The position numbers and the translations under genes are program-made. This document shows positions 6,701 through 25,800 of a stretch of 64,000 nt of DNA, one piece after another; position 1 is the first letter of the stretch, and each line of letters opens with the position of its first letter. The DNA is from Lepidodermella squamata (lineage: Eukaryota; Animalia; Gastrotricha): contig JBLDXI010000001.1 in NCBI GenBank assembly GCA_047495785.1, positions 248,001 through 312,000 on the forward strand. Direction: 5' to 3'. The notes beneath the pieces were generated by a model. That model saw nothing but the letters and a program-made list of their open reading frames with translations. It made no database searches and was not told the origin of the DNA.

Positions 6701-9700
6701 CATCCGAAGATGAGGTGACGTCGGACGGATTTCCATCTCCACATTGGTCAGCGAAGTCGCACAAGTATTTTGGATCAAGGCAAACACCAGAGCCAACGCA
6801 TCTAAATTCAACGTCAGGCTTGCACGAATCCTTAGGCTCCAAGCCTTCACAGTTCTCGAAAGCGATATTATCGATTGCAGTTATTGCGGGTAACTCGCTA
6901 CGATATGACGCACCAGTCTTTCATTACAAAACGTGATCACCATTCAGAGTGTGAAACGGCGTTAATTACCTTGAATTTCAAGTAAAATGGCGAGTTATGT
7001 AAGCCGAGTGGAATTGAATGTTTTTTCCAGCTTTGAGGCTTGTATGCCTTCGTTGCCCATAAACGAGCTGATGTCATCGGCAGGGATTCATTCACAGCAT
7101 TAGGTGTTAACATGTACACATCGAGATTGCCTCCATAGCTAGATCCTTGAATGTACATGTAGTACCAAAAGCTGATTTGGCATTGAGGGCCCGTGGATTT
7201 TACTGGCCAGGCCTGAGTCAACTCAGTGCTTTCATAGCTAGTAGCCGCCAGTGAACTGTCAGCGCCAGCATATTTTCCTTGGCCACCCCTGTAATCCCTA
7301 TCCGGGCAGGCTCCTAGAAATGCGCATTTAAATTCACCTTAATATCAATAATATTTCGCAAGAATGAACCTTTGCAAGTTTCCTCGATATTTTTCGGATC
7401 CAACTGCTTCCACACAAACCTAGTATCAGACGATGGCAACCAACCGGCGGATTCAAGTGAAGAAAATTCGTTGAAAATGGTCGGATTTTTCACTGTAGAT
7501 ATAACCCGACTATTCATGTAGAAAAATAAAGTAGTGAACTTACCACACTGAGGAGGCGATTCATCTTCGGCAGCCGGGCAGTCGTTGACGAAGTTGCATA
7601 AGTAGTCGCGACTGATGCATGGGTATTCCGGGGCAGACTTATAACAGAAGAACAGCGATGAATTACTGGGGCAGGGCGCCGGAGTGGTCGATGGAAGAGG
7701 TTCCAGGGTTGTGAAAACTGGCAACTCCCTTCAAGATTCCGAAATAATCAATAACAGTTTCGATATGTGAACAAAAATTTACTTGTTTGGAGCCAATCGG
7801 CAATATTCCGTGAAAGAGATATCGTCGATAGCCACATCGCCCGTATAAGAGGCACCAGAAATAACTTCAAAGATTATCTGATAGTCATCCCTAACGTCGC
7901 TCATGTCCACAACAGCATTCAGCCATAAATCTCCAACTTCACCGCTTCGGCTCCACTTTTTGGTCAGGGGGCCATTTATCAAAGTGCGATAGTAGACGTT
8001 CAGAGTTCCGATATCAGAGCCATACATATGGTAATAAAACCTTAGCTTGCAGTCCTTGCTCTCGCTTCCCGAGAAGGTAACATTAGATGCTAGCCACGCC
8101 CTGTGGAACTTCTTAGCATCCGAAGATTCAATGTAGTAGTAATGACCACTCGCGTTAGCAAACGAATGATCAAAGCGCGGTCCTGTCTCATATGAAGAAG
8201 TTGGCCCGGCATTCAGTTCCCATTCCAAATCCAAGCCGTTGAAATCATCAGGCTTGACGGGTGAAAAGTAATCGTCGAAAGGACCACCCTCGAAAGTAAC
8301 AACGATTCTACCAGGGCATACTTCATCACTATAATCCCCACAGTTATCAGTTCCGTCGCAAACTACATGGCGCAAATGAAATCGGCTAAAAATAACCATG
8401 AAATTCAAAGCAAAACAAACCCAAGGCCTTGGAGATGCAAGCGCCATTGCCACACCTGAATTCATAGGACGGGCAAGTGGGCTGCGGAACAGGAGCATTG
8501 CAATCGACGTAGGTGAAGTCGTCAAAAGCAATTATACTGGGCATGCTCGTCGGAAAATCTATTATATGTCGCAAGAAAAACTGGAACGGTTGCTTCTGTT
8601 GACCAACATCTGCCGTGAAAGATTTCCAAGTTCCACCGGTAGATCTGATATAACTTAGTTCCCACAGCTTCAACTCCGAGCTCGAACCGTACGGAATTAC
8701 TCCAAACTCTACCTCTTGGTCGTAATTTGAAACAGGGAAGTAGTACCAGAATGTCACCAAACAATGTCGATTAGTAGTCGAGAAAACAGAGCTCAACGCA
8801 AGGGATATCGTCTTTTTAAACCTGTAATCTGCCGAGGTCCCGTTTGGCCACGAAGCAAGCTTTATAAACAAAAATTAGTTAAAAAAATAACGCACATTAA
8901 GTCTTACGTAGTGACCACTTTGATCTAAACGGGTATGATCAGCAAGAGGTGCGTTAGAAGTCAGCAACCGGCTGCCAGATGCTCTAAGCCAGGCTATAGT
9001 TGGAGAATTCCCAGAAACTTCCCAACCGCAATTGGATTGTTCGAAACCACACGGTAGGAACATTTCTGCCGGAGGAATGGGCTTTGGCGTGGTAACACCA
9101 GCGCATGGGCCGCTTTGATCGAGCATCAAATCGTCGATAGCAATGTCGCCTTCTCCCGCAATTGTTGACATCTCGCCAACCAAAACAATCGAATACTCTT
9201 GATCGGCCGTTATGATAACTTTGCCTTGCTGCCACTTGTCACCCTGGTCGCCGGTCACACTCCACGCAGTGTAGTTTTGCCATTGTTGTCCGGTAGGATA
9301 GAGAACCTGAACACTCAACGTGCCGGCGCTTCGGCCGTTCATGTGGTACCAAAACGTGAAGCAATGACCCTCCGTCGAACCGCTGACGATCTCACTGGCG
9401 TAGTACGCTCTACGTGGTGCACCGGCTGTAGATTGAGATGATGAGTCAATAAACATGTAGTAGCCGGTTTCGTTGCCGTACGTATGATCGCTGCTAGGCC
9501 CTGAATAGCGACTGAATGTTGCATTGTTGTTCCGAAGCCACTCAATTTGAGCGATTTCGTAGACGTTACTCCAGCCGCATTGAGCGTATTCGAAATCGCA
9601 GGTAGCGACCGCTGCGCAACGGCCATTTCTGACACCTATATCATCGATGGCTATATCGCTGAGCGCAGAATTGCCTACAATTGCCTCAATTGCTACTCGG

Positions 9701-9825
9701 TAATCGCCACTCTGTTGCGAAACGGTGAAATCACTTCGCGAAATCTCAATCTTTCCTTCCCACCAATGATTTCCGTGATTACCCGACCTGGAGAAAGTCA
9801 CTCTGCGGTTCTTGCTTGGGTAAAC
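3741..9825 (-). CDS. Giant MAM/LDL-receptor class A domain protein (MALRD1/apical endosomal glycoprotein-like), 3' part: end of the interrupted MAM domain, about 7 further MAM and 5 LDLa domains, TM helix, cytoplasmic NPLY tail; multi-exon
   Basis: ORFs show repeated MAM signatures (CxFE...W...GPxxDHT...G(Y/H)Y...FWYxMxG...W...IAIDD) and LDLa signatures (C..G.C....CD...DC.D.SDE). TM exon 4023-4126 reads LPLILGITFGIIGLVVASGLTAYLI, the next exon reads ...GLSNPLYG..., and the last exon ends ...ENGDL* with TGA at 3741-3743. Confidence 0.9.
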
Positions 9826-9827
9826 AT

Positions 9828-10025
9828 CCCAGGAGAATTGGTCTTAGCAAGATTCTTCGCTGCAGCTGCGATGATCAGCAATTATCTTTAATGATCAAGC
9901 AAGATCAGCTAAGTTCCTGCACGATCTTGCAAAATCTTAGAAGATCTTAGCTTAGGTCGCCTTCAATGATCTTGGCTGATCTTGGTTGGTCTTAACTTAT
10001 GTTCGCCGTCTAAATTAATATCTTG
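9828..10025. repeat. Left TIR plus subterminal repeats (CAAGAT / ATCTT(G/A) units)
   Basis: TIR at 9828-9839 is followed by many GATCTT/AAGAT units, including TGATCTTGGCTGATCTTGG at 9967-9985. Confidence 0.8.
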
Positions 10026-10931
10026 GATGAGTTTCTCAGCTGCTTTTATCTACGTCTTTGTTCTTTATAACTGGGACCTTATTGCTGCAATAAAACCGTT
10101 CGATGAAACAAGCGAATTCATAGCTGACAACTGCGCTTTTATTTGCCACAGGAAATGACGACAAATCGACTATAATATTTTATATCGTAAATACAAAATC
10201 ACGCAGGAACCGAAGTACAAAAGCATATGAAGCATATTAAAAAACACATATAGAAAAGGACAAGACAGAAGGTATAACAGACAAACAAGCCGAGAGCTAT
10301 AAAGCATATTACGCAATAGATATAAAAAGGCAAGATAACAGGCATAACATAATTATAGAAAATTTTCAGGGCAGACAAACACATTTATTGCGCGAGTAGA
10401 CAGCACAATAATATAATTTGAAGAGTTGAGAACAAATGATTTTCGAATCAATATTAAAATATTTGGAAGCATATTTAAACTAAAAACCAGAAAAAACTAA
10501 AAAATAATTAGGCAAACACTGCAAACTAGCTCCTAGAATTTTCAGCACCAGCTATAATGGTGAGATGTAAAAACCAAGACAGGATTTGGAATCGGATGAA
10601 GTTAAAAATACCACGAACTATTGGATTTTGAAAAATTTTGTACCCCCTTTCGTCCACCAAAGCTAGAAACAAACCGAGAACAAATCAATCTAATTTGAAT
10701 CGAAATTACGAAAAAATTACGATTTTAGAACCTATTGAACACCCTAAACACCAGACAGGATCGAATTTGATGAAGCTAAAATTATGATTTGAGGAAATTC
10801 CTAAGCCCCAAAAAAACCCTAGCAATGCTCGAATGTGACGAATAAGCTAAAAACGGTTTTATGAAATTTTGAACCAGATTTAGAACCCTGAATTATGCTT
10901 TGAGCGCAAATTAACACAAAAAATATATAAC

Positions 10932-12549
10932 TCAGTTGCCGTTGCTGCCGTTGTTTTCCTTGTCTTCTTCTTCTTCGATGTCGCGAATTCGAGCGCCGAG
11001 GTCAGACGTTGACGGCTGACTGCTGCGACGGCCTTTGCGGCCAGCACGCCGGGAGGCCTCGTCGTTGCCCCATTGGTTTACCGCGTCCCGAACCTGGGCC
11101 CACTTCAAGGCCGCGTTGTCGGCCCCGAATAGACCGTAGAGAGCTTCTAAAAACAGAAAAAGAAACAGTTAATGAGATAAAAAAAATGATTAGAACGATG
11201 GTTGAGCAACGAAAAACTAGATCAATTAAATCACGTACTCTTAAGCAAACGCAACTGGTCACCATGGGTACGCTCGGTGATCGGCTGACGCGGGCTGCGG
11301 GTACTTCTCGGCTCGATTATCGAACTGACGAGGGCATCGGCTCCGAAAATTACTATCGCCGCCTCGATGGCCCACTTCGTGTGGCCGTGCAGCACGCCGC
11401 CAAGCATGGCAAGATCCACATCGCCATAGATGAAGCGCCCGGTGTTGTTGTTCGAATTCGCAGCGCCTTGCTGGGCTCGAAGGAACCGGCGCAGCTCGAC
11501 CATCAGTGTCTCGAGCTATAATAACAGAGAAAAAAGTCAAAGAATTTCATCGAAAAAACCACCTTAAAACATTAAATTTTAGAATGAGCAAAGGGTTTAC
11601 AGTTGAGAATGAGGATTTTGAATTCAATTATTTTTAAACGTAATGTTTGAAATTATTTGACTAAAAAAGTCAACGAATTCCAACAAAAAAACACCTAAAA
11701 TTCAATTTTGGAATAAGCAAAGCTCAATAATTTTTAACAAAATTCAGCTACGGAAAAGCAATTATTCAATTTTTGAAAGATTTTTTCGCAGTCGAAAACC
11801 GAAAGAAAATAAGCCGAATAACAAATAAAATGACCTACTCTTGAGTCGCGGCCATCTGATGAAGTCGACCCGCTGTCGGCTGGCGTAGAAGCAGGGCGCG
11901 ACGATGGCGTCTCTTCGATAGTGGATGATGATGGCGGGCGTGCAGACGACGACGACGACGGCGTAGTTGACGCGTGTTGAAGCGGCTCGCTCAATAGCTG
12001 GCGAAAAGAGGCAGGTGACGACGTCGGCGTAGCTGAGGCGTGCTGAGACCGCGGACGCGGCGGCTCGCTCGAGAGCTGGCGGACTGGCTGACTGGCGGAC
12101 TGGCGGACTTGCTGAGACGACGTGGCTGCTTTTCGGCCCAGCTGCATGGGCTTCGGAGGCGGCATCCGAACAAGGTCGGCCGGAACCGACTTCGACGGTG
12201 TAGGTGAAGGAGATGGAGACGGCGATGGAGACGGAGAACGAGATGGTCGCAGAGGCACATCGTCGTCCTCAGTGTCGCTGCTGATGACCACGGAGCGCTT
12301 CGCTTTCTTCGACTTGGTCGGCGGCTGTGCGTTCATGCGAAGGATGGCGTCGTGCGCGACTTGAATTTCGGCCTCGGAGCCGATGGCGGCGATTTCGGCG
12401 TCGTACAAGTTGCCGGCGTCTCGCCAGTTGATGCGAAGACGCCCGCCTACAACCAGTTGCTCAGCTGTAAAGCCTCGCAACATGTTGTCACCAGACCGCA
12501 TAATGCTGAGCGTGCGATCTTTGGTCCACAAAATGAGAAAATGTTTCAT
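10932..12549 (-). CDS. Transposon accessory protein (~400 aa): Tudor/SH3-like beta-rich N-terminus, Ser/Pro-rich linker, C-terminal BEN-like domain
   Basis: Exons 12549-11839, 11515-11239 and 11146-10932 join through GT-AG introns into 1203 nt of open frame. The C-terminal segment AIVIFGADALVSSII...RQPI...DQLRLLKKALYGLFG...KWAQVRDAVNQWGND fits the BEN pattern (lF..e.L...S...r..ld...l..ik......W..ir.ain). An in-frame upstream ATG at 12615 is an alternative start. Confidence 0.7.
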
Positions 12550-13469
12550 TATGATCAGCAATGTCAGAGAAATAAATTCGAGCTGAGAGCAAGAATGATT
12601 TAAACTTACCAACATACTCCTTCTTATACGTTAGGCGGGCCAATCAGCGATTTGGCGCGCAAAAATAGATCGCGCGCATAGATATACCTCTAAGAAAACT
12701 GCGCAAACTACGGAAAAGAAACCGCGGACATTGCGAGCCGAACCGTGCGTGAAGTCACAAAGCGTGAACAAGAGAGTCCAACAGCTGTTATTATAGGCGG
12801 CGCCCCTGCAGAGTGCGCGCGCGCGGGCGCGCGCGAAAAACTACTCAGGTGAATAGCGCGCGCGGTTTAATTAAAAACAAAACATAATAAAAAGTTATAT
12901 CTTTATTGCGCCACCAGATAAGAGAAAATCAGATGAATGTTAATCAATTGTATTTTCGAACGTCCTGTTACAATCGGCCGACAACCTGAAAAAAATGATA
13001 AAAATATAATCGAGGCCATTTTCCAAGATATCATGCATTATAACAATATTATAATGCAAAATTAATCATCGTATTTTTTCGACGGTAGACCAGCGGCTAA
13101 AAAAAGCAGAATCCCTTATAGCAGCCATGGGTAAGGCGTTAAGTCGGTTCGAAAACGTAAAATATAAAAGACAGCAAAAACGCAAAGAATTTTTCGAATT
13201 TTTCAAAAATTTCGGGAAATTTCACTTGTTAAGAACAAATTTATTGGAATTGAATATGATTTTTTGCGATTAAAACCGTGAAACATACGAGGGATTTTTC
13301 ACAGCTATTTAAGGATTTTTCTCCGCCTCAAAAAATAAAACAAAAACGATGAAATGCGTTAACTTCAGCGCGGGGCTTGTTGAAATTTTAATTAGCGCTC
13401 GTGGCGAAATTTTTTGGCACATATTTCGACGTGGAAAAAGGAAATTCAGATATTTTTAAACAAACCAGG

Positions 13470-16189
13470 CTAGAAAATTTCGTCGTCCAGCTCGATGTCA
13501 ACAGCAATGGAGGAATTCTTCGTGTTAATGATGGCGACCGGGCAGATCACAGCACCGATGTTCAAGCATACGAAAGGAGTTTGAATATTCGAGTCAACTG
13601 AGCTGAATTTTTGAGTTTCAGATCTCATGATGTCATCGCAGCAACAGCTGTACAGCTGCTTCACCAGCTCCGAAGCCCAAGGAGACAATGCAGCGGCGCG
13701 AACGATTGAAAACAAATAGTCTTCAACAATTATTGGGATCTCCCGCACGATAGCCAATAAAGACCCGCCGTTTGCTTCTTGATAGAAGCAATGGACGTCG
13801 TATATGCGCCGATTGTGAGCTCGGAGGGCGTAGGACCGGGGTAACTTCGGTTTCGCACCACGCGATCGAAGACGGGCGGAAATTACGTTCGATTTGAAAG
13901 TTATTTTTGAATAGAATTCGCCGCCCGGGTTGTTTTCGAGCAGCTTGCGGATCTCGCGAGGAATTTTAGCTGTCGACAGCTTTGAATTCGAAGGAAGAGG
14001 CTTTTCTTCAAGCAACATTTTCAACCCGGCAAAGCGGGCCATTTGCTCGATTTGATAGCGTGTCCCATGATAGCACTTTTTCAAATGGGCGATCATTCCT
14101 TCAAATGTGAAAGTGGAAAATTCCGAGAGTCGACCAAATAGCTGCGCGCGATCCGGTAAGTGCATGGCGAGGTGAGGATTTTGGACTTCGCTGTCTCGGC
14201 CGTAAAGACTCCCTAGCTCTCTCTGGTACAGTCGTAAGAGGCGATAGGCAAGATCGGCGTATTCGCCGCGCTCTTCGAAAGTATCAGGCAGTGCTGGACT
14301 CAGCAACAGTCGAATGGCGAGAGTGTAGCTGATGTAATGGAAGTAGACTGCGTCAGAGAGTAGTCGGTACAAAGCGGGCGGACCGAGGATAAGAACTAGC
14401 ACCTTCGTATGCTTCGCACGATACGAACTGTCGAAATGACTCAACAGGGGCAGACGCAGAGACTCCATACAAACGGGCAGTTGCATTCTAGCAATGGAAT
14501 CTTCGAGTACGGTGCGGCTTTCGAGTCCTAACATAGGGTTTGGAGGAAGCCAGCGGACGATGAAATTTTTGTAAACACCCTGGAATTAAAATTATTAAGA
14601 AATTAATAAAGAAATAGGCGAAAAAACTAACCTCGATAGATTGATGAACGTAATCAATGCCGACTTGATTTGGAAGAACAACATCCTCATCATCGTCGAA
14701 ACAGCAATCTCCTTTGCATCCATGGCGGCGTAACCGCCGATCTTCCGCAAACGACTCCGCTGTCCTTTGCTCGGCTGGCACAGCAAGATACTTGCGAACT
14801 AGTACCTTTTTCAGCTCAGCCTCGGTAAGTTTCTCGCCTTTTTGATAGCAGAATAAGCAGCCCCAGTGCCCGTTGTGTGCAATGAAATTGAGAATCGCGG
14901 CCAATGCAGGAAGATCGCCAATTATAACATTGATGTTCATCCTAACAGTGACCGTGACCTCTTCTTCGATTCGCAAAACATAGGTAGACCGAATCGCCTT
15001 CAAGATTGGCTCCAGGTAGAATCGCCATTCAACCTCGTCCTTCGGCTTTCTCACTGCAGACCAAAATCCGAGCAATAGCATGTTACGCTTCTTGAAGCGG
15101 GCCGGCGTAGGAATTGTATTGATTGTGGCAAGAACAGGCCAAACTGCCAGGCGATTCTTACGCGCCAGAGGTGCCCCATCTGTGTTGAGATTGATTGAGA
15201 TTGATTGATCTTTTTCGTCGAAAAGATGACGATTTCGACGAATGACCATGCCCAATTGATGGGAGACGTGACAGTAAACAATCCGAATTTTCTTCGAATT
15301 GTTCGCGTGATCTTCGCCCCGATAGCAGCAATCGCCATTTCGACAAATGTCACCATCAGCTGCGCAGCTGCATTCGATGCAGTGAGTTAACACTTCCGAA
15401 TTTAGCAAACGGCCGATTCGACGAGCTTCCTCGGCACAGTCAGGTACGATGATGCCATCACGTCGCAGAATCTTGCGCAAATCGCTCACAAATCCAGAAT
15501 CAACGCCGAAATTTCGACAGTAAGACTGAAAAATTCTGCACCCCGTTGACATGCCAGTCAGCAGTGATAGGTGCTCTGCAAAAAACTCAACCATGTCAAA
15601 ATGGATGGCGTCCAGATCTTCAGCAAAATTAGCCGATCCATTTCCTAAAGTTACGATGTATAAACAACACAAGACATTTACAAAGTAAATACCAAGGTCA
15701 ATGAGATGATCATCGGCATCGAACGAGTTACTGGGAGCCCTTTCAGCATGGTCATAGTCAACACCCCCATCACCATCATTGATTATGCCGTGGTTATCAA
15801 TGTCTGGAAGAGATGCAATGTCGCTTGGTTCTATTAATAATACGAGCAGATGAGAAATAAGCGAAATTAAAACAGTGCCACCGACCTTGTTGGCCAAGGA
15901 AAGAATCATGAGCTAGCAGTGGAGGAGAATTTTGACTGGCTTGGAGAGAATCTAAACATAACGTAGTATAATAACACGCTCGTGGGTAGAAGAAAAGCAA
16001 ACCTTGTTGGTAATTACTTGAAGATGAGTCTGCTGGACTTGTCGGAGGTAACGAGTTTGCACCATCGCCGCTGGTCGCCGCATGTTCCTGCGTATTCGAG
16101 TTAGGAGCAGCTGGACGGCCGCTACGGTTATAGACAGCGGAGGTAGACGTCGGCTGCGCTGCGCTACCAAGCCTATTAGTTCTAACCAT
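13470..16189 (-). CDS. CMC/EnSpm-family DDE transposase (~837 aa, 5 exons), apparently intact
   Basis: Exons 16189-16003, 15951-15886, 15830-15693, 15644-14632 and 14579-13470 join through 48-55 nt GT-AG introns into 2514 nt of open frame. Motifs: NLNTDGAP...VWPV...N..P..RF...NMLL, GDLPA...N...HNG.WGCxxC, DYVH...GV (the G is made across the 14631-14580 intron), NPHLAMHL, FSTFTFEG. Confidence 0.9.
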
Positions 16190-16649
16190 TTCACCTAAAA
16201 TTGAGAAGTAATGAATGATAACGATGGTTTTAATGGAGCTCTAAGAGCGAGTTTCGACATGATGTATAACGCGAGATATGTATCGCTACGGGAAAACTAG
16301 TGCTACGTGTTACCAGAAGTGAGTATGAGTTGAGAATTAGGGAGGCCACCGCAAACCGCAACGTGGACCGTTGGAATTTCGAATTTCAAAAAATTCATTC
16401 ATACTTGCAATTTATTTATTTATATATAATTATTAAAATAATGTTACTGATAAATATTTTTCAAAATAAATTGAATGCTAAACATTTATATTTAATTATA
16501 ACTTGCTGCAGGTTTTTAGGACTTAAACGTTTTTGGGCGTTTTCAGGACGCAATCAAATTTGCGGCGTTAAGAACGTTTTCAAGTGAGCTACATTGTTGA
16601 AAAACGTCGGATTGTTTTATAGAACTAAATATCTCGGCTTTCAGGTATT

Positions 16650-16806
16650 TCTTCCAAGTTCGTTTAATATCTTCCAAGATTTACTTAGATTGGCTTAAAA
16701 AGCGTCTACAAGAATCTTTCCAAGACTTACCAAGATCATAAAAGATAATAGTCTTTGTTGATCTTGGCTGATCTTGGCCGATTAAAAAAGCCCTAATTCT
16801 CCTGGG
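16650..16806. repeat. Right subterminal repeats plus right TIR
   Basis: Repeated CCAAGA/ATCTT units. TGATCTTGGCTGATCTTGG at 16759-16777 is identical to 9967-9985. TIR at 16795-16806. Confidence 0.8.
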
Positions 16807-19800
16807 ATTAACTGAAAGCTGGCCAATGTCATTGCCATTCATATGATACCAGAAGTGGAAGCAATTGGTTGTAATTGAGCCTTTCGGAATAGGGAAAGGA
16901 GGTGATACTAAACCAGCCCGTTCTCCACGCAGACGCCCTTCAGCTTCGATTTGGACAAAGTAGCCTGAATCAGACTCGGTAGTGTGGTCGATAAGAGGCC
17001 CAGTCAGAGTCGAGTGAGAAACATCGGACCGACGAATGCGTTGCCACTGGAAATCATAAGGATCGACTCCTTCCGTAGTCCAGTCACAAGTGTCTGACTC
17101 AAAATCACACTGATTGCTATTAGTAACGCATTTTCCGCGAGAAACAGCCACGTTATCGATTGCAATATGACCGCGATAAACGCGGACAGAAAAGCCGTAG
17201 AACATAAGGTAATAACGTTCCTTAGGTGGATTTATGGTGACTTGGCCGATACGCCATTGATTGCCCTGAGATGTCGTCCTGGCAAATAAATCGACATACG
17301 AGTTGCGGTAATACAGTCGAACGCGGAATGATCCGGGATGTTCAGGCCCGTAAATGTGGTAATTGAACGTCAGACAATACGGATCTGTCATTGGCTCATA
17401 CCAAGGGCTAATAAGTTGAGCATAGCCTTGGAACGGCTTGTAAGTCAATTCAGAGATGAACAGGTAGTTTTTAGAGCCAGGTGGTGGGGTTCCAGGTCCT
17501 CCAAGTTGAGCCGCTTGCGAACCATCGCCGAAATTCCAATCTAAGTAATCAAAATCCCGATAGATTTGAAATATGGCAGTGCATGGATTCAACTCACCTA
17601 TTTTGGGATCTAGTTCTTTTCGGTCTTGCGTCCATAAGCAAGTCGTTTTATCGTCAAACGAACATGTTAGCTCAGGCAAACTACGGGTGACACTGCATTG
17701 GTCGAAAACAATGTTATCGATGCCGATAGTGGCTTCATTTCGGCCACGAGGCACGTTTAGAGGCACGACTTCGATGTAAATGCGGCTGTTTGCTGGATAC
17801 GACTGCAAAAACGCAACCGGTTGAGAAGTTTGCCAAGTATTTGAAACTTTGAATTCCTGATCTCCCACTCCCTTCGGATCAGTTTCAGGAGGATCAGACG
17901 CTGACTTTATCCGAACAGTCATCCTCACTGCTTCATTAGCGTTCGCACCTTTAATCCAGACGGCGAATTTCATGGTACAGGTGCTTGCCATTCCAGGCAA
18001 CTCCGGGCTAGTAAGGGTTAACATGTCACTGGGGCCACCATTGTTATCTAAATAACAATCGAAACTAATTTAAAGAAAGATAAATACAAGCAAATGCTAA
18101 CAAATGCTGCCACTCGCAATATGAAGGTACCAGCCGCGTGGGTTAGTTGTTGGTGGGCCGTCGTAGCTCGGATCGTTTGGCGCAGGAGAGACTTGCTGCA
18201 CAGCGACGTTCTTCGTAACAGTCTGGGCCCAGCTGCAAGTTGTTCCAGCGGTTTGGTTTCCAACTGAAAATAAAATGTTGCTAGAAAGATTCAAGCATGA
18301 CCAAAAATGATTACATGGCTCGAAATCACAAGGTCCATGTCCATACTCGTCATCACCAAGAGGACTAAAGAAAGCGTCGTAAGTACAATTCAAGAATTAT
18401 CAATATAAATGTTGATTACCAGTCGACCATGAAATCGCCGACATAAGTGCTGGAGAGGCAAACGCCCGGAGGCGATGCACTAGGAGCAACTTGACAGCGG
18501 AAATAGTTCGGTGCGAGACACGTTTTCTCGTCATTTAGGAAGCAACCGGCGGACAGCGTGACGTCATCCAAGGCAACGTAGCCAGTATTAGAAGCCCCGT
18601 TGTTGGTAGCTCTGAACTCAACCGCGAAAGCGCCATCGGTTCCAAATTCTGTCAAGCTTACTTCACCCCTCATCCATGAACCGCCAGTGCTACCAGAAAA
18701 TGTTTCCCCGTACTGAGCATACGAACCGTCAGACTCGCGAACCAAATAAATGTTGAGCGAACTTTGGCTCGAGGCAATTTGATAGAAAAATCTGACCTAG
18801 ATGGCGAAGAATAAGTTAGGACCAGATCAGAGATACTTATTACGAGCTCATACCTTGCAGTCAGAATTGCCCTTCAGATAGAAAGAATTTTTCGACAGAA
18901 TTCTATTGACACCCTTCACATAGGTGTAAACAGAGTAGCCTGGAACCAAACGAATGTTTTAATACAGCTGCAATCAAAAGAGCTTTAGATTACCGTAGTA
19001 AAGGCCGGTGGTGTGATCACGAGTCGGAGCTTGATTATCAATTTTAAGTAAAATCTCCGTAAAAATCTTCGCGAAATTATTACCTTGAGAGGTCAGCTGC
19101 ATTTGCGAGTTGCGTGTTCTATACCATGTTCCCGCACTGACTCCGAATCCGCAAGAATTGGACTCGAAATCGCAGTACAACGCCGTCGAAGCTGTCAAAA
19201 GCAATTGTTTTATACCCTATTGTAAATAAATTATTCTAATTACCGCAGTTAGCTTCGTCACTTCCGTCGCCACAATCGTCAGCAACTGCAATTTTCAAAT
19301 AAGGACAGTGAGTAATGTATACGATTATACAAGAGAATATTTACGATCGCAAACAGCCGATTGAGGGACACAAGCTCCTGTGCTACCGCAGCGGAATTCA
19401 TTGCTGTCACAGGGTGTAGAGCGAGGCACTAAATTTATTTGGTACGAATATGAAATTTCGCAGTAATATGATAGGGCTCACTGGGGAAAGTGCAGTTTTC
19501 AAGAGCGACGTCGTCGACTGCTCCTACTCCACTCGTTGACAAACGCTTAAGCCCTCGGATTAATAGCTGAAAATTGCTGCTATTTGAAATGTTTCATATT
19601 TTTAACGGATTTTTTTACCGAGTAATCGGAATGGATACGGCCTAGCTTCAGTGACGCTTTTTTCCAAACTCCTCTCCCGGTGTTTTCATTGAAGTTGGCA
19701 ATATCAAACCGAGTATCACCCAAGCCGATTGTGACATCAAAATGAGTCCCTGAATGAATAATGGTGTAAATTAATATCAGCAGGGAAGCAGGGTAGGGAA

Positions 19801-22800
19801 GTCTTGCTTACAAATAGTAGTTGAAGTCGTTGAAGGTCCATAGGTTTGATACCAGAATGTTAGCATGCAAGTTTCAGGAGTAGGGCTTATGTGTACTAAT
19901 AGGTCAGCGTGGTCTTGTCGCGTTCCTTCCGTATTCAAAGCTAAAAAAATCTCGAAGCTAACAAAATCGTGCATAAACATTCGAATTTCTACCAATGTAT
20001 TGATAGCCACCAGTTTCAGAGTTCGTAGTGTGATCTTTTGATGGTCCGACATTTTGGGTTTCGTTGTCAACACCATGTCCCAGTGCAAACATTTGATCAT
20101 TTATTTTATTGACGAAGGGCACCCACGAGCAATTTTCCATTGATGTGTCGAAATCGCAATTAAATCCGCAATCAATCTCATCCTCACCATCAGGGCAGTC
20201 TGGTACAAAATCGCAACGTTTCTGGAACGAAATGGTCACAGAACCATCAGGGCGAGGTCGGCTGCAGTTGAAAGTTAGGTGAGGCAGGAGAGTTTCGTTA
20301 TATTTATCGCAGGTTCCAGGCAGCCTGTTTAAAGTTAAAAAATGTGCAATAGTATTGGCACTCTAATCTGGCGATTAGAGCTAGAAACTTACAAAATTGT
20401 GTCATCTACAGCAATGTCGGATTGTCCCGAGCTGCCGATAGTTCCACGAAGTTGCAGAATTATTGGGTTGATTCTGTTCACATCGATCTCAACAAGTGCA
20501 CGCTGCCATTCATTGCCTTGATTTCCAGATTTCTTCCAGAAAACCTTTTCGCCCTCTGCTGCCAATAACACCTCAAGCGAACCCATGCCAATTCCACCGT
20601 ACATGTGGTACCAGAAGCGGAAGCACACCTTGTCATCAGAAAACTGATATGGCGACACATACTCGGATTCGAGGATAGACTTTCTCGCGAAATCAACAAT
20701 CACGCTGTAAGATGACTCGAGGTACATGAAAGAGCCATCACTAGTTCCCAGAGTGTGGTCGACAGAGGGGCCCGTGCCCGGCGTGTTCGTTGGTCCGCGA
20801 TGATCGGTCCAAGTGTAAAAATTCGACGCGCTGTTTTGCCAACCGCATTGCTCATCTTCGAAGTCACATTGAGCAGGCAGAGTGCAAGATCTCATCGTAT
20901 TAATTTCGATGTCATCGATGGATATCCCAGCATTATTGAAGTCACCGGTTGCTTCAATGGCAAGTCGGAAATCGCCGGAGCTTTCAATATCAACAGACAT
21001 TCTGCGCCAAGTTTCCGAAGTGTAAGTCATTGAGTAGACAGCCTTAGCACGCTGTTCCATGTCTAGACCGTTGTCGATCGGGATGACGGTGACAACGAAA
21101 CGAAGGGGTGAAATTCCGCTTGACCAAATCCACATGCGAAGACAGCCAGCCGGTGCCGTGGGGGAAAGCCGATGCTCCGTGCTGTAAAGCTTGGCTCTGT
21201 TACCTTTAGAATCGCTGCCGGCATGCATGTAACGACCGAAGGTACTTTGGTAGGTATGGTCGTAGCTGGGGCCGTATTTAGGTCTAGATTTGCTATCGCC
21301 CTTAGCCCACTGCCACGTTGTTGGAGCGTCGGGGTCTTGGTACCATCCGCAGATGTCTTTATCCTCGAAGTCGCATTCCGTGAACGAGGAACAAGTGCCT
21401 TTAGTCATGACGATATCGTCAATGGCTATTACGCCACTTGATCCGCTGAATTTCGTCGCTTCAACGATGATCTATTAGGATTCAGAAAATCAAATGAATG
21501 CGATGGAGATTCATCTTAAAATATCTTCACCTTGCTGTTAGCCGGAAGCTCGAAATTTGCATGACCCTGAACGTTTAAGACATTTTGAAAGCTAGAATAA
21601 TACAACAGCATTATATCATACTCGAATCCATTTGCTTCCTTGCTCGCCGCTACGTGTCCACTCCAATGCCTCTGCCTCATTACCCACCACAGTATAGATG
21701 TTGAGGCTATCGGCGTGTTTGCCATTGATGTAGTACCAGAAACGGAAACAGTGCGGGACGTTATCCATGTCTGAAGAAAACTGTGGACTCGTGATTCGAG
21801 CAGTACCATTCGGCATGTTCTGAGAGCTCGCAGCTAAGTAGAGATATGAGCCAGTGCCTTCAACATCGCTGTCCGGACCGAACTGAGAGGCCTTTCCCAT
21901 TCCGCGCTCGAAAACGTACTCCTGCGCCTCGTCGGTTTTCCAACCACACAAGTCGTCGTCGAAAGTGCAGGAGAATCCGGAAACGGGCGGAACGGCTGTC
22001 ATTACATTACATTAAATTATAATTTGAAAGATAGCTAAGCTTTACTTGTAGGAGGAGCTGGAGTAGTCGGTTCCAGGTTTGAGCAGGGCGTATTTTCAAG
22101 GAAGCTCACGTCGTCGATTGCGACGTAGCCCGACGTATCAAGCGACGTGCGGTCAACCGATAAAGTAAGCCTGAGCGTTGAGCCTGTGATAAATGCACAA
22201 ATGCGGAAATGACAAATTTATACACCATTTCGACTCTAATTACCCGGCGCAACCGAAGTTTTAGCTCGCCACCAACCACCTTGTGTGGCAATTTCATACG
22301 ACGAGATTGAAGACCCGACTGCTAGCTGTAGCCTCATTGCACCTTTGAGTTGATACCAAACTGTCACGCATCCCTCCGCATTGTAAGGTCCAGTCAGCGG
22401 GGACTGGATTGCAGGTCTCAATACGTCAGACGACCAGTCACCATAGACGAACAAGTAATGTCCGAATGCGGAATTCGTGGTGAAATCAGCTTGTGGTGCG
22501 TCAGCAGGCAGGTCGCCGCTAGCTGGCGAAGTCCAAATCATGGATTCTGAACCGCTGACCGCATTCTGATAGCCACACATGCTGTCTTCCCAAGTGCAAG
22601 CCATAGGATCCGGGCAACGACCATTCACAATAAGCAGATCATCCAAGCCAACTACATTTGAATCATCAGCCGTAGCACCGCTGAAAAGGACCTTCGCCGT
22701 CGAAATCAAGCTGTTCGAATCTGGAGGAACTGTGGCGTAACCAAGCTCCCAGTTACCCTTAGTTGAACCTGTAAGGCGCTTCAGTTCCACATTTCTAGCG

Positions 22801-25800
22801 CTACCGATTGCCGGAGTGTATTGAGCGATGGCACGCAGAGTATTCAATGGGCTTTGAGAATCAAGGAAATACCAGAAAATTAGACAGCGGTTGCCACTAG
22901 CCGTGAAAGTTGTGCTTTTAGTCAGCCTCACATCTGAGGTCGTTTTCCCGGTCACGGACATTGCATATCCATACGATGTTCCAGTGGTATGATCAACCGA
23001 AATAGCGCTTTGTGCTGTTATCAAAAATATATTCATGTGTAAGGCATAACCTAGATAAAAAATATGTTTACTTCGTCGCCAAGTCGGATTTGAGCTGTCC
23101 GAAACCCAATCGCATTGATCGCTTTCAAAGTCGCAGGCATTCGAGGTAATTTTGGGACAGCCACCCTCGAACAATGCAGTTGATTTTACCGAAAAGACTC
23201 CAGACCAGCGTGTGTCGTTCGAGGAAGATTCGGCGGTAACCCCAAACTTCAACGTGAAATCGTAGTTGGAGTCGATGGGCAAGCTCACTGAGCGGTATTT
23301 GTAGCCCTGAGAACCCAGGCGAGCAAAAATGACTCGTTCGCCGCCATTTGATATCAGCGTTGCCATTGTCGTGCCAGGATAGCTGCCGTGAAAAGCGTAC
23401 TCCATCTGGAAGCAGTACTTGCCGCCGGCAGCAGGAGTCGAAGTTAGCCATGCGTTGAAACTGTCACCAGTCAACATGTAAGAGATAGTGGCTGTCGATT
23501 CTGCAATAATAGGACATAATTAGACTCGCTGCAATTTAAGATGAAAAATATTGCCTTGGTTCATTGGGTCGACCTTTGCTTCCCAACGAATCGAGTTGTC
23601 CGAAGTTTCCCGTTGCCACAAGCAGAACGGATTGGCTGCGTCTTTGAAATCGCAAGTCAGTGCTCGAGAGCCTAACATAACATTTTTTGGAGATCATTCA
23701 ATAATAAAAAACAAGGATTTCTCACTTAAATCGACCGGGTTGTTCCCGCCAGGCAGAACCTTGCAGCCCGGAGCAGACGAATCGAAGAAGACATCGTCAA
23801 TGGCCAAGGCTCCGCTGTATTCGTCGCTGTTGTAGGTAGCCTCAAAGACAATTTGATAAGACTGTTTGAACGATGTAAGATCGATTGGCAGGGTTGCAGA
23901 TTGCCAATACGCGTTCGCACGATCGGTGGTCGACCAAAGAGTTCGCTCGCCCTCCGGAGTGGCGGCAATGACTCGAAGAGTCGTCATATCGTTCAAACTC
24001 GCTGCAGAACTGTAGAATGAAAACCGAAGACAGCCGACATCCCCAGCATTGCGCGGTTGACTTCTTAGGCGTGCCAAGTCACCGCGTCTCCGGAAGGGTG
24101 TCAATGGAGCGTAAGCGTATTGACCTTAATAGATTGAAAAGATAAGCACGCTAAAAATAAATGAAGCTGGAAACTTTACCATCGCTGGTCTTCAGCGTAT
24201 TGTCGAAGGCAATAGGACCGTCGTACAAACCGGAACCGATAAGCCAGTCGAATTTCGAGTTTTCCTCGTCGTTCTCCCAAGTGCATAAACCATTTTCGAA
24301 GTCGCATTTATCTTAACAGATTCAAAATTTAGGAATAAGTAAGTTTAATCCCAATAGACTTGAATAATTACCAGGATTCTCGCATGCATGCCTTAGAATT
24401 TTAATATCGTCGACAGCAAATACTTTGTTGGAAAAGCTTGACCCAAGGACATCGTATCGGGCGTTGAACACCAAGTTAAAACTAGAGCTGCCTTGCGATG
24501 CTGCAAAAAATTATTAGAGCTCAAAACTTGGATCAATTTTCGCAGCAATTTTTTACAGAAATCATGCTCTGCAAAACTCCAAGACGAAGGAGCACTAGGA
24601 AGGCCGCTAATGACAGGCCCTCTGTCGCAATTGTTGATACAAACATCCATCCCAGCATTACTGGATGATGAATCTGATCCCAACTTGTACCTGCATATGC
24701 AAATTGTTAAAGCATTCAGTTTTCTAGAAAATAGCCTTATCTTACCAGAATTGAAGGCAATACTGTGGTGGCGGTGGTGACTGGGACTCCGTGAAAGAAA
24801 CGCTTAGCTGAGAAACATAGCTCTGCCTGCCATCCGCAGATACCGAAGCGTAGGTTCCTGAAAAGGCGACGAATTCGAGGCCTTGGTTGATTTTCACACA
24901 AATTTACCTTTGGTTGTCTGCAGGGTATGATCTGAGCCGACAGCATTGAAAACCCACTTCCCATTGCCAGACACTGAAGTTGAGGTGGAACCGCAGGGCG
25001 CCGATGTACCATCTTCAAAATTGCATTCAAGCTCTAAAGAGACAAAATTTATACGCTTCCGATCGTGCAATATTTAAACCCCACCTCTTCTGGGACATGC
25101 TCCATTCGCAATAACAAGGTCATCTATAGCGACAGTTCCAGAATACTGTCGGGATTTTGTGCTTGAGAAGTAGAACTATAACAGATAGTAATAATTTGAG
25201 AGACAAAGCAATTCTCAAAACAATTTACGGGAATAGATGTGGAGGAAGCCGTGGTTGTATACTCGGCGTAGTTCCATGCCTTGCCTTTGTTTTCCGTGCG
25301 AACCCAATAATCGTCATTTCGCGAAATGAGTCCAGTTTTGAGACCGCTTGAAATAATTATACGAGATCCGTCAGCCCAATACCAGAAAGAAACGCAGTAT
25401 TTTCCAGTGGCAGGAACTCTAATATTGTTATTTAAATCGATGGACGGAGTTGTTGATGTACTGTATAATGTTGCGTAATAGTAATAGCCCGAGCCCGTAG
25501 TGTGATCACGGAATGGTCCCGAGCACCCCGCTCCTGTTCCAGATCCGCACGCTCGAACCCATCCGCTGCCAGTAGTGGTGAATGAGCAGGTATTCGCATC
25601 GAAGTTACAAGAAAACGCAACGTTTGATGGCGCTGAAAAGATGAAAATCTTTCGAATGTGATAAGCTGAGTAGAAAGCTAGTAAATATACCAAAGGTAGG
25701 ATAAGGCGTGACCGGAGTTGTGGTTGTTGGTAAGGGTCGTTGCGTGATCGGGTTGGTCGGAGAAGCTTCAGCCGGGTGCAAAGCGCCACTAATACCGTCG

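Follow-up and report, generated by a model that had tools for sequence, protein, structure and literature searches.

The stretch analyzed here (hereafter the window) comprises 64,000 nucleotides of the gastrotrich Lepidodermella squamata (contig JBLDXI010000001.1, positions 248,001 to 312,000 of the forward strand) and contains a complete DNA transposon, designated family A, which carries two genes on the minus strand: a transposase and, downstream of it on the same strand, a second, smaller gene with three exons. The structure of this second gene, its relatives and its possible role in the transposon are described below, and the coordinates of all features are given in Table 1 as positions in the window.

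As read from the sequence, the second gene is a real gene of three exons, with 237 codons in the first exon, 92 in the second, one split codon and 70 codons in the third, i.e., 400 codons in total, and both of its introns are canonical GT-AG introns. The first-pass annotation of this DNA had joined three exons into a protein of approximately 400 residues, and this model was reproduced: both splice junctions (11839/11515 and 11239/11146) were found where it had placed them, together with all strings it had quoted from the translation, namely KHFLILWTKDRTLSIM, LVVGGRLRINWRDAGNLYDAEIAAIG and KSKKAKR in exon 1, IFGADALVSS and LRLLK in exon 2, and ALYGLFG...LKWAQVRDAVNQWGND in exon 3, when the latter is translated in the frame beginning at 11144 (the split codon followed by this frame gives ALYGLFGADNAALKWAQVRDAVNQWGND...). 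The G+C content amounted to 60–61% in the exons and 27–28% in the introns. KSKKAKR is followed by a disordered linker of 165 residues, 50% of which are Ser, Pro or Thr, and acidic patches are present in the protein as well. The range proposed earlier for the gene (10932–12615) held for the exons and should probably be shortened at the 5' end, where the ATG at 12549 is more likely to be the start codon than the upstream ATG at 12615, because the paralogous protein of a second transposon family (family B, see below) opens with MFILVSW exactly opposite MKHFLILW. Upstream of this start, the minus strand at 12577–12615 reads ATG (12615) and then GTAAGT...CTCTCAG, possibly a mini-intron of 27 nt or a trans-splice acceptor before the main start; the frame stays open through it, and therefore the list of open reading frames (ORFs) begins at 12615. 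The spacer that separates the transposase from the second gene (12640–12860, minus strand) has a promoter-like appearance, with several GCGCGC(GC) runs around CTATAATAA in an otherwise AT-rich sequence.

Table 1. Features of the family A transposon and of its second gene (positions in the window)
Feature	Positions	Strand	Description
Whole transposon, family A	9828-16806	minus (genes)	6,979 bp; identity among copies ends exactly here
Target-site duplication AT, 2 bp	9826-9827 and 16807-16808		flanks the insertion
Terminal inverted repeat CCCAGGAGAATT, 12 bp	9828-9839; partner 16795-16806		arms perfectly complementary
Subterminal AAGATC/GATCTTGG array, element 3' end	9893-10003		from repeat count
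Subterminal AAGATC/GATCTTGG array, element 5' end	16720-16785		from repeat count
Transposase coding region	13470-15909	minus	two ORFs with an overlap; a short intron near 14,500-14,600 probably connects them
TATA-like CTATAATAA	12788-12796	minus	in a GCGCGC-rich stretch ~240 bp 5' of the start codon; candidate promoter of the second gene
Second gene, exon 1	12549-11839	minus	237 codons; N-terminal domain of ~72 residues, KSKKAKR, acidic patch, Ser/Pro/Thr-rich linker
KSKKAKR, residues 79-85	12295-12315	minus	nuclear-localisation-like basic stretch, from the translation; function putative
Second gene, intron 1	11838-11516	minus	GTAGGT...TTATAG, phase 0 (after a complete codon)
Second gene, exon 2	11515-11239	minus	92 codons + 1 base; one helix and, after it, the initial two thirds of the helical domain conserved at the C-terminus (KWAI..FG..L.SI.EP)
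Second gene, intron 2	11238-11147	minus	GTACGT...TTTTAG, phase 1 (after the first base of a codon)
Second gene, exon 3	11146-10932	minus	remainder of the conserved domain (LFG...R.AVNQWGND, Arg-rich tail), acidic C-terminus, stop TGA 10934-10932

Family A was represented in the 121-Mb assembly by the copy in the window and by three more, on contigs C24 (100% identity), C1 (at 1.61 Mb, 100%) and C43 (99.8%), over 6,979–6,983 bp, and the second gene lay inside the inverted termini in all four of them. A paralogous family, B, was found in two forms. The first, B1, occurs on contigs C6 and C54, measures 7,324 bp and has the termini CCCTAGKGAT and 2-bp duplications. Its transposase is 37–40% identical to that of family A and sits upstream of a homologous three-exon gene; when the whole A element was compared with the whole B1 element by tblastx, only the transposase and the second gene matched. 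The N-terminal domains of the two second genes share 25% identity over 68 ungapped residues (pairwise E = 5e-7) and are followed in B1, as in family A, by a Ser/Pro-rich linker, while identity reached 27–35% in exon 2 and 31–41% in exon 3, including the invariant AVNQWGND. All three exons are open in B1 and the intron phases (0 and 1) occur at matching places. Exon 2 of B1 contains no Met at all and is therefore expressed only if spliced to exon 1.

The second form, B2, is a 3,472-bp deletion derivative with three copies (contigs C11, C19, and C3), in which both element ends and exons 2–3 are retained, with intron 2 at the same position and in the same phase as in A and B1. Its version of the gene opens at an ATG in exon 2 and is intact in all three copies (G000:C11:1827429-1830635, C3:215834-219061, and C19); perhaps B2 encodes the C-terminal domain alone, as a possible competitor or repressor, or the derivative is simply young. 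Between B1 and B2, the ratio of nonsynonymous to synonymous substitution rates (dN/dS) was approximately 0.10 (exon 2) and 0.24 (exon 3), based on proportions of synonymous differences (pS) of 0.70 and 0.68, i.e., near saturation, and of nonsynonymous differences (pN) of 0.175 and 0.319, respectively, and the intron between these exons was not visibly conserved. The remaining matches in the genome were decayed relics with stop codons (twice on C45 and on C3, C42, C33, C17, and C50), and no host paralogue outside transposons was found in the 121-Mb genome, every match being an element copy or a relic. Judged by these comparisons, the second gene is an old component of the transposon lineage that evolves under purifying selection. 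It is a constituent of the element rather than a passenger: the gene and the transposase are the only coding regions common to families with 38% identical transposases, its introns were kept, and purifying selection acts on it. Its earlier description as a second transposon gene is thus upheld by its position within the inverted termini in 4/4 copies, by its retention alongside a 38% identical transposase and by purifying selection, and the reading frame is neither absent from the other copies nor decaying neutrally in them, being intact in A and B1, with a dN/dS of 0.10–0.24 between B1 and B2.

The ends of the elements carry short repeats, which the first-pass annotation had also pointed out, and these are real: all five exact copies of GATCTTGG in the 64-kb window are located within ~170 bp of the element ends. 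The hexamer AAGATC/GATCTT was likewise clustered in the terminal 250 bp (A: 9 of 17 occurrences, binomial P = 7e-7; B1: 19 of 23, P = 5e-19; B2: 19 of 19, P = 1e-16), and in family B the motif is often palindromic (AAGATCTT). The core of the repeat is common to families A and B though their inverted termini differ, and the most invariant stretch of the protein, R.AVNQWGND with the Arg-rich tail, is also common to both.

The transposase is encoded by two ORFs that overlap by 47 nt (14488–14534) in different frames and that a short intron probably joins; the likeness to the family B transposase extends to residue 436 in the first ORF and restarts at residue 2 of the second, and the conserved coding stretch reaches from ~15564 to 13797. 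Two Pfam families were matched by the ORFs, Transposase_21 with E = 1.2e-5 and DUF1258 with E = 5.7e-6, in each case at a score that falls a few bits short of the gathering threshold. The element is a member of the CACTA/Mirage/Chapaev (CMC) group, given its Transposase_21-type transposase, its 12-bp inverted terminus and the 2-bp duplications at four insertions of family A (AT in the window, GA, AT, and CC) and three of family B (GT, AC, and CG), and the duplications together with the DUF1258-like transposase point to the Mirage side of this group. Target duplications of 2 bp have been documented for animal CMC elements (PMC6004678; PMC12730594). The copy in the window is inserted in a gene rich in MAM domains (Pfam), with flanking MAM ORFs at 8875–9801 and 16681–18024 on the minus strand. 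With copies at 99.8–100% identity, this insertion is likely to be recent; the transposon is young and probably still mobile. Further large ORFs with MAM domains are present on the same strand at 20389–21408 and 22236–23477. Elsewhere in the genome, a 16-mer taken to be the Ciona spliced-leader sequence has two exact occurrences (G000:C3:4215888-4215903 and G000:C36:1027628-1027643), compared with ~0.06 expected by chance and 0 for the control; as a hint at a tunicate or related host this is weak, since an array of spliced-leader genes would yield far more copies.

In order to interpret the protein, domain searches and fold predictions were carried out exon by exon; the C-terminal domain spans the exon 2/3 junction, and each of these analyses saw at most two thirds of it. 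No domain was detected by Pfam in any exon, in sub-pieces of the exons or in the exon-2 and exon-3 members of the family. A GCOM2 match on the low-complexity linker was discarded as meaningless, and homology to Myb-like proteins or to TnpA, the second protein of plant En/Spm elements, was rejected, as no Pfam match was obtained. For the N-terminal domain, AlphaFold predicted five strands and a helix from a three-sequence alignment, with a predicted local distance difference test score (pLDDT) of 51.5. Foldseek returned no match for this low-confidence model at E ≤ 0.001, VIA-align reached a maximum Z of 4.4 with generic immunoglobulin (Ig)-like sandwiches, and there were no Tudor, SH3 or chromo chains among the 50 VIA-align matches listed. 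With Pfam and Foldseek both empty, a model of pLDDT 51.5 and Z ≤ 4.4 on Ig-like sandwiches, the Tudor/SH3-like barrel that the first-pass annotation had seen in this domain found no support.

The same annotation had called the C-terminal domain BEN-like. Pfam detected no BEN domain in exon 2 of five or exon 3 of four family members, including the database relative P0003 (see below), even at E up to 10, and a six-frame search of the whole genome with the Pfam BEN model PF10523 (curated cut-off 23.2 bits) did not match the second gene. The only matches of PF10523 in the genome were G000:C33:310350-310490 and G000:C4:567165-567305, both sub-threshold (16.9 bits each) and covering model positions 1–45; their scores are identical, and they resemble two copies of a single repeat. 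Searches of the Protein Data Bank with hidden Markov model (HMM) profiles of the exons gave one chance match for exon 2 (E = 1.8), none for exon 3, and no BEN chain. From a five-sequence alignment of exon 2 only, AlphaFold predicted five helices (pLDDT 57.0), and this model of part of the domain had 0 Foldseek matches against the Protein Data Bank and a maximum VIA-align Z of 3.7, with no BEN chain listed. The BEN-like assignment therefore found no support in the searches by exon and stands as a resemblance in spacing. A beta-rich N-terminal and a helical C-terminal domain are reasonable descriptions of the predicted structures, and by sequence and partial folds the protein is an orphan that is not assignable to BEN or Tudor/SH3.

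Relatives in protein databases were equally scarce. Word-based searches of 5.8 billion proteins with the N-terminus of family A, the exon-2 profile and the N-terminus of family B retrieved P0003 only, and when the exon-2 profile was run in full with HMMER against 1.84 billion representatives, six matches were obtained, of which P0003 was the one credible. P0003 is a 96-residue fragment translated from a 1,286-bp Logan contig and is 33% identical across the whole of exon 2; its similarity ends precisely where exon 2 meets exon 3 (...LIK, followed by GNIF...), a break that, judged from the protein sequence, would fit a phase-1 G|GTAAY donor. The five other matches were rejected as artefacts, being fibronectin-II-like or tandem-repeat proteins with many short repeated matches. 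The top matches P0001, P0005, and P0006 read C.FPFIY.G..Y..CT...NGG.KWCATS where the exon-2 profile reads ..FSGVDYANC.....G.NKWA.., a curious likeness, but one lacking the cysteines. The ESM Atlas gave nothing usable, and scans of viral and metagenome contigs found no relatives.

The best explanation overall, which we hold to be somewhat probable, is that the product of this second gene of a CMC element is a nuclear helper that binds the end repeats. The helper would be supplied in trans; its C-terminal helical domain and the adjacent Arg-rich tail would recognise the AAGATC(TT) arrays in the last 250 bp of both ends, while the beta-rich N-terminal domain and the disordered Ser/Pro linker may hold copies of it together or recruit the transposase, and the outcome would be assistance in the assembly or regulation of the transposition complex, as provided by TnpA in plant En/Spm and by the Myb-like protein in PIF/Harbinger. 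A more specific proposal is made tentatively, as one that could well fail: the C-terminal domain may be an unrecognised DNA-binding module (a new fold or a remote BEN relative) which reads the partly palindromic AAGATC(TT) repeats and is required in trans for transposition, in which case animal CMC/Mirage elements would have their first defined two-component system, a transposase with an end-binding helper. Several points weigh against an end-binding helper. No DNA-binding family or fold was detected in Pfam, Protein Data Bank profile or fold searches by exon, the confidence of both AlphaFold models is low (pLDDT 51.5 and 57.0), and neither AATAAA nor ATTAAA occurs within 530 nt 3' of the stop codon. 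Selection is shown on family B and by the conservation between A and B, the four family A copies being too alike to show it. Moreover, the transposase itself could read the subterminal repeats.

A C-terminal domain that is a very divergent BEN, and as such a sequence-specific DNA binder, would refine rather than contradict the end-binding helper, and we consider this reading doubtful. The spacing ..FG..L.S....P......L..L.....FG......W..VR.AVN.W....RR resembles what we take to be the BEN consensus, exon 2 is predicted by AlphaFold to be helical, and the end repeats of family B are often palindromic (AAGATCTT), whereas no match was obtained in Pfam (E up to 10), with PF10523 genome-wide, in the Protein Data Bank or in fold searches, at a sensitivity lowered by the exon-wise tests. 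BEN is an established sequence-specific DNA-binding domain (PMC11601247, citing Dai et al. 2013). It is also conceivable, though we think it unlikely, that the protein is of use to the element in other ways than by attaching to its ends, for example by repressing or timing transposition, by countering host silencing, or by docking on chromatin for targeting. Purifying selection shows usefulness to the element only, the Ser/Pro/Thr linker and the acidic patches would suit protein–protein or chromatin contacts, and B2 keeps the C-terminal half alone, possibly as a truncated regulator; however, Pfam and fold searches returned no reader, silencing-suppressor or enzyme domain, and direct recognition explains more simply why families A and B share both a repeat motif and an invariant protein motif.

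Two further readings concern the nature of the gene itself, and both appear highly improbable to us. CMC and other DNA transposons capture host sequences, and the gene could in principle be a captured host fragment carried as a useless passenger, but no host paralogue was found, the introns are kept across families as divergent as their transposases, and dN/dS is 0.10–0.24. Alternatively, the exons may not form one gene, with the exon 1 product ending inside the intron and exons 2–3 being separate or non-coding. The read-through from exon 1 is indeed open for 35 more codons (ORF 11734–12615), exon 2 of family A has an ATG at its fifth codon (ORF 11231–11503), and the B2 gene starts in exon 2; against this, exon 2 of B1 is under strong purifying selection despite containing no Met, the phases of donors and acceptors agree in A as well as in B, the tail produced by read-through lacks conservation, and the intron G+C is 27%.

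A transposon with a second, end-binding protein is a known kind of DNA transposon, and several systems can be compared with the present element. TnpA of the plant En/Spm elements is a second protein that binds subterminal repeats. As in En/Spm (CACTA), the protein described here is the second protein of a CMC element that bears arrays of short subterminal repeats at both ends, but no sequence similarity to TnpA was detected (no match to Transposase_24 or any other Pfam family with any exon); the gene appears to stand apart from the transposase that precedes it, possibly under a TATA-like promoter of its own, and not to be produced by alternative splicing of a common transcript; and the element resides in an animal, duplicates 2 bp of its target and ends in CCC...GGG instead of CACTA. 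The first-pass suggestion of a TnpA analogue is thus reasonable in the functional sense, circumstantially through the subterminal arrays, and was not extended to homology, which was undetected. In PIF/Harbinger elements, a Myb-like protein is believed to attach to the ends and to recruit the transposase. These elements resemble the present one in being two-gene DNA transposons with a transposase and a smaller conserved protein, and differ in the superfamily of the transposase and in their Myb/SANT domain, which was undetected in our Pfam scans. BEN proteins (Insensitive, Elba, BEND, and NACC) have a C-terminal domain of ~100 residues that is helical and closes with an aromatic/basic helix, as does the predicted domain here, and the candidate sites here are partly palindromic; the searches with Pfam, Protein Data Bank profiles and folds by exon gave no match. 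Animal CMC elements with 2-bp duplications (ENS1_Cis and nematode Mirage) have the same Transposase_21/DUF1258-type transposase and the same duplication length, but their termini are CAC...GTG, unlike CCC...GGG here. ENS1_Cis of Ciona savignyi creates 2-bp duplications (PMC6004678), and Nuwa families encode a transposase together with a Myb/SANT DNA-binding protein (PMC12730594). No description of a conserved second gene of the present kind in animal CMC elements was found in the searchable literature, where absence is not proof.

Multi-gene DNA transposons with an end-binding helper are therefore not new as such, and what is distinctive here is the host element, an animal Mirage-like CMC transposon, together with a helper that has no detectable TnpA, Myb/SANT or BEN homology and almost no relatives in the databases searched. 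The best examples of end recognition split from catalysis are two-component transposons such as En/Spm with TnpA and Harbinger with a Myb-like protein. Domestication of such helper proteins into regulators of the host has occurred repeatedly, and CMC elements are relatives of Transib and RAG1. If the proposed role is true, a conserved helper, a candidate binding motif and four near-identical, probably active copies would together offer a tractable system for the assembly of CMC ends, and a protein family essentially without relatives in current databases would be added. Should the domain prove to be BEN-like, it would also bear on the origin of the animal BEN regulators.

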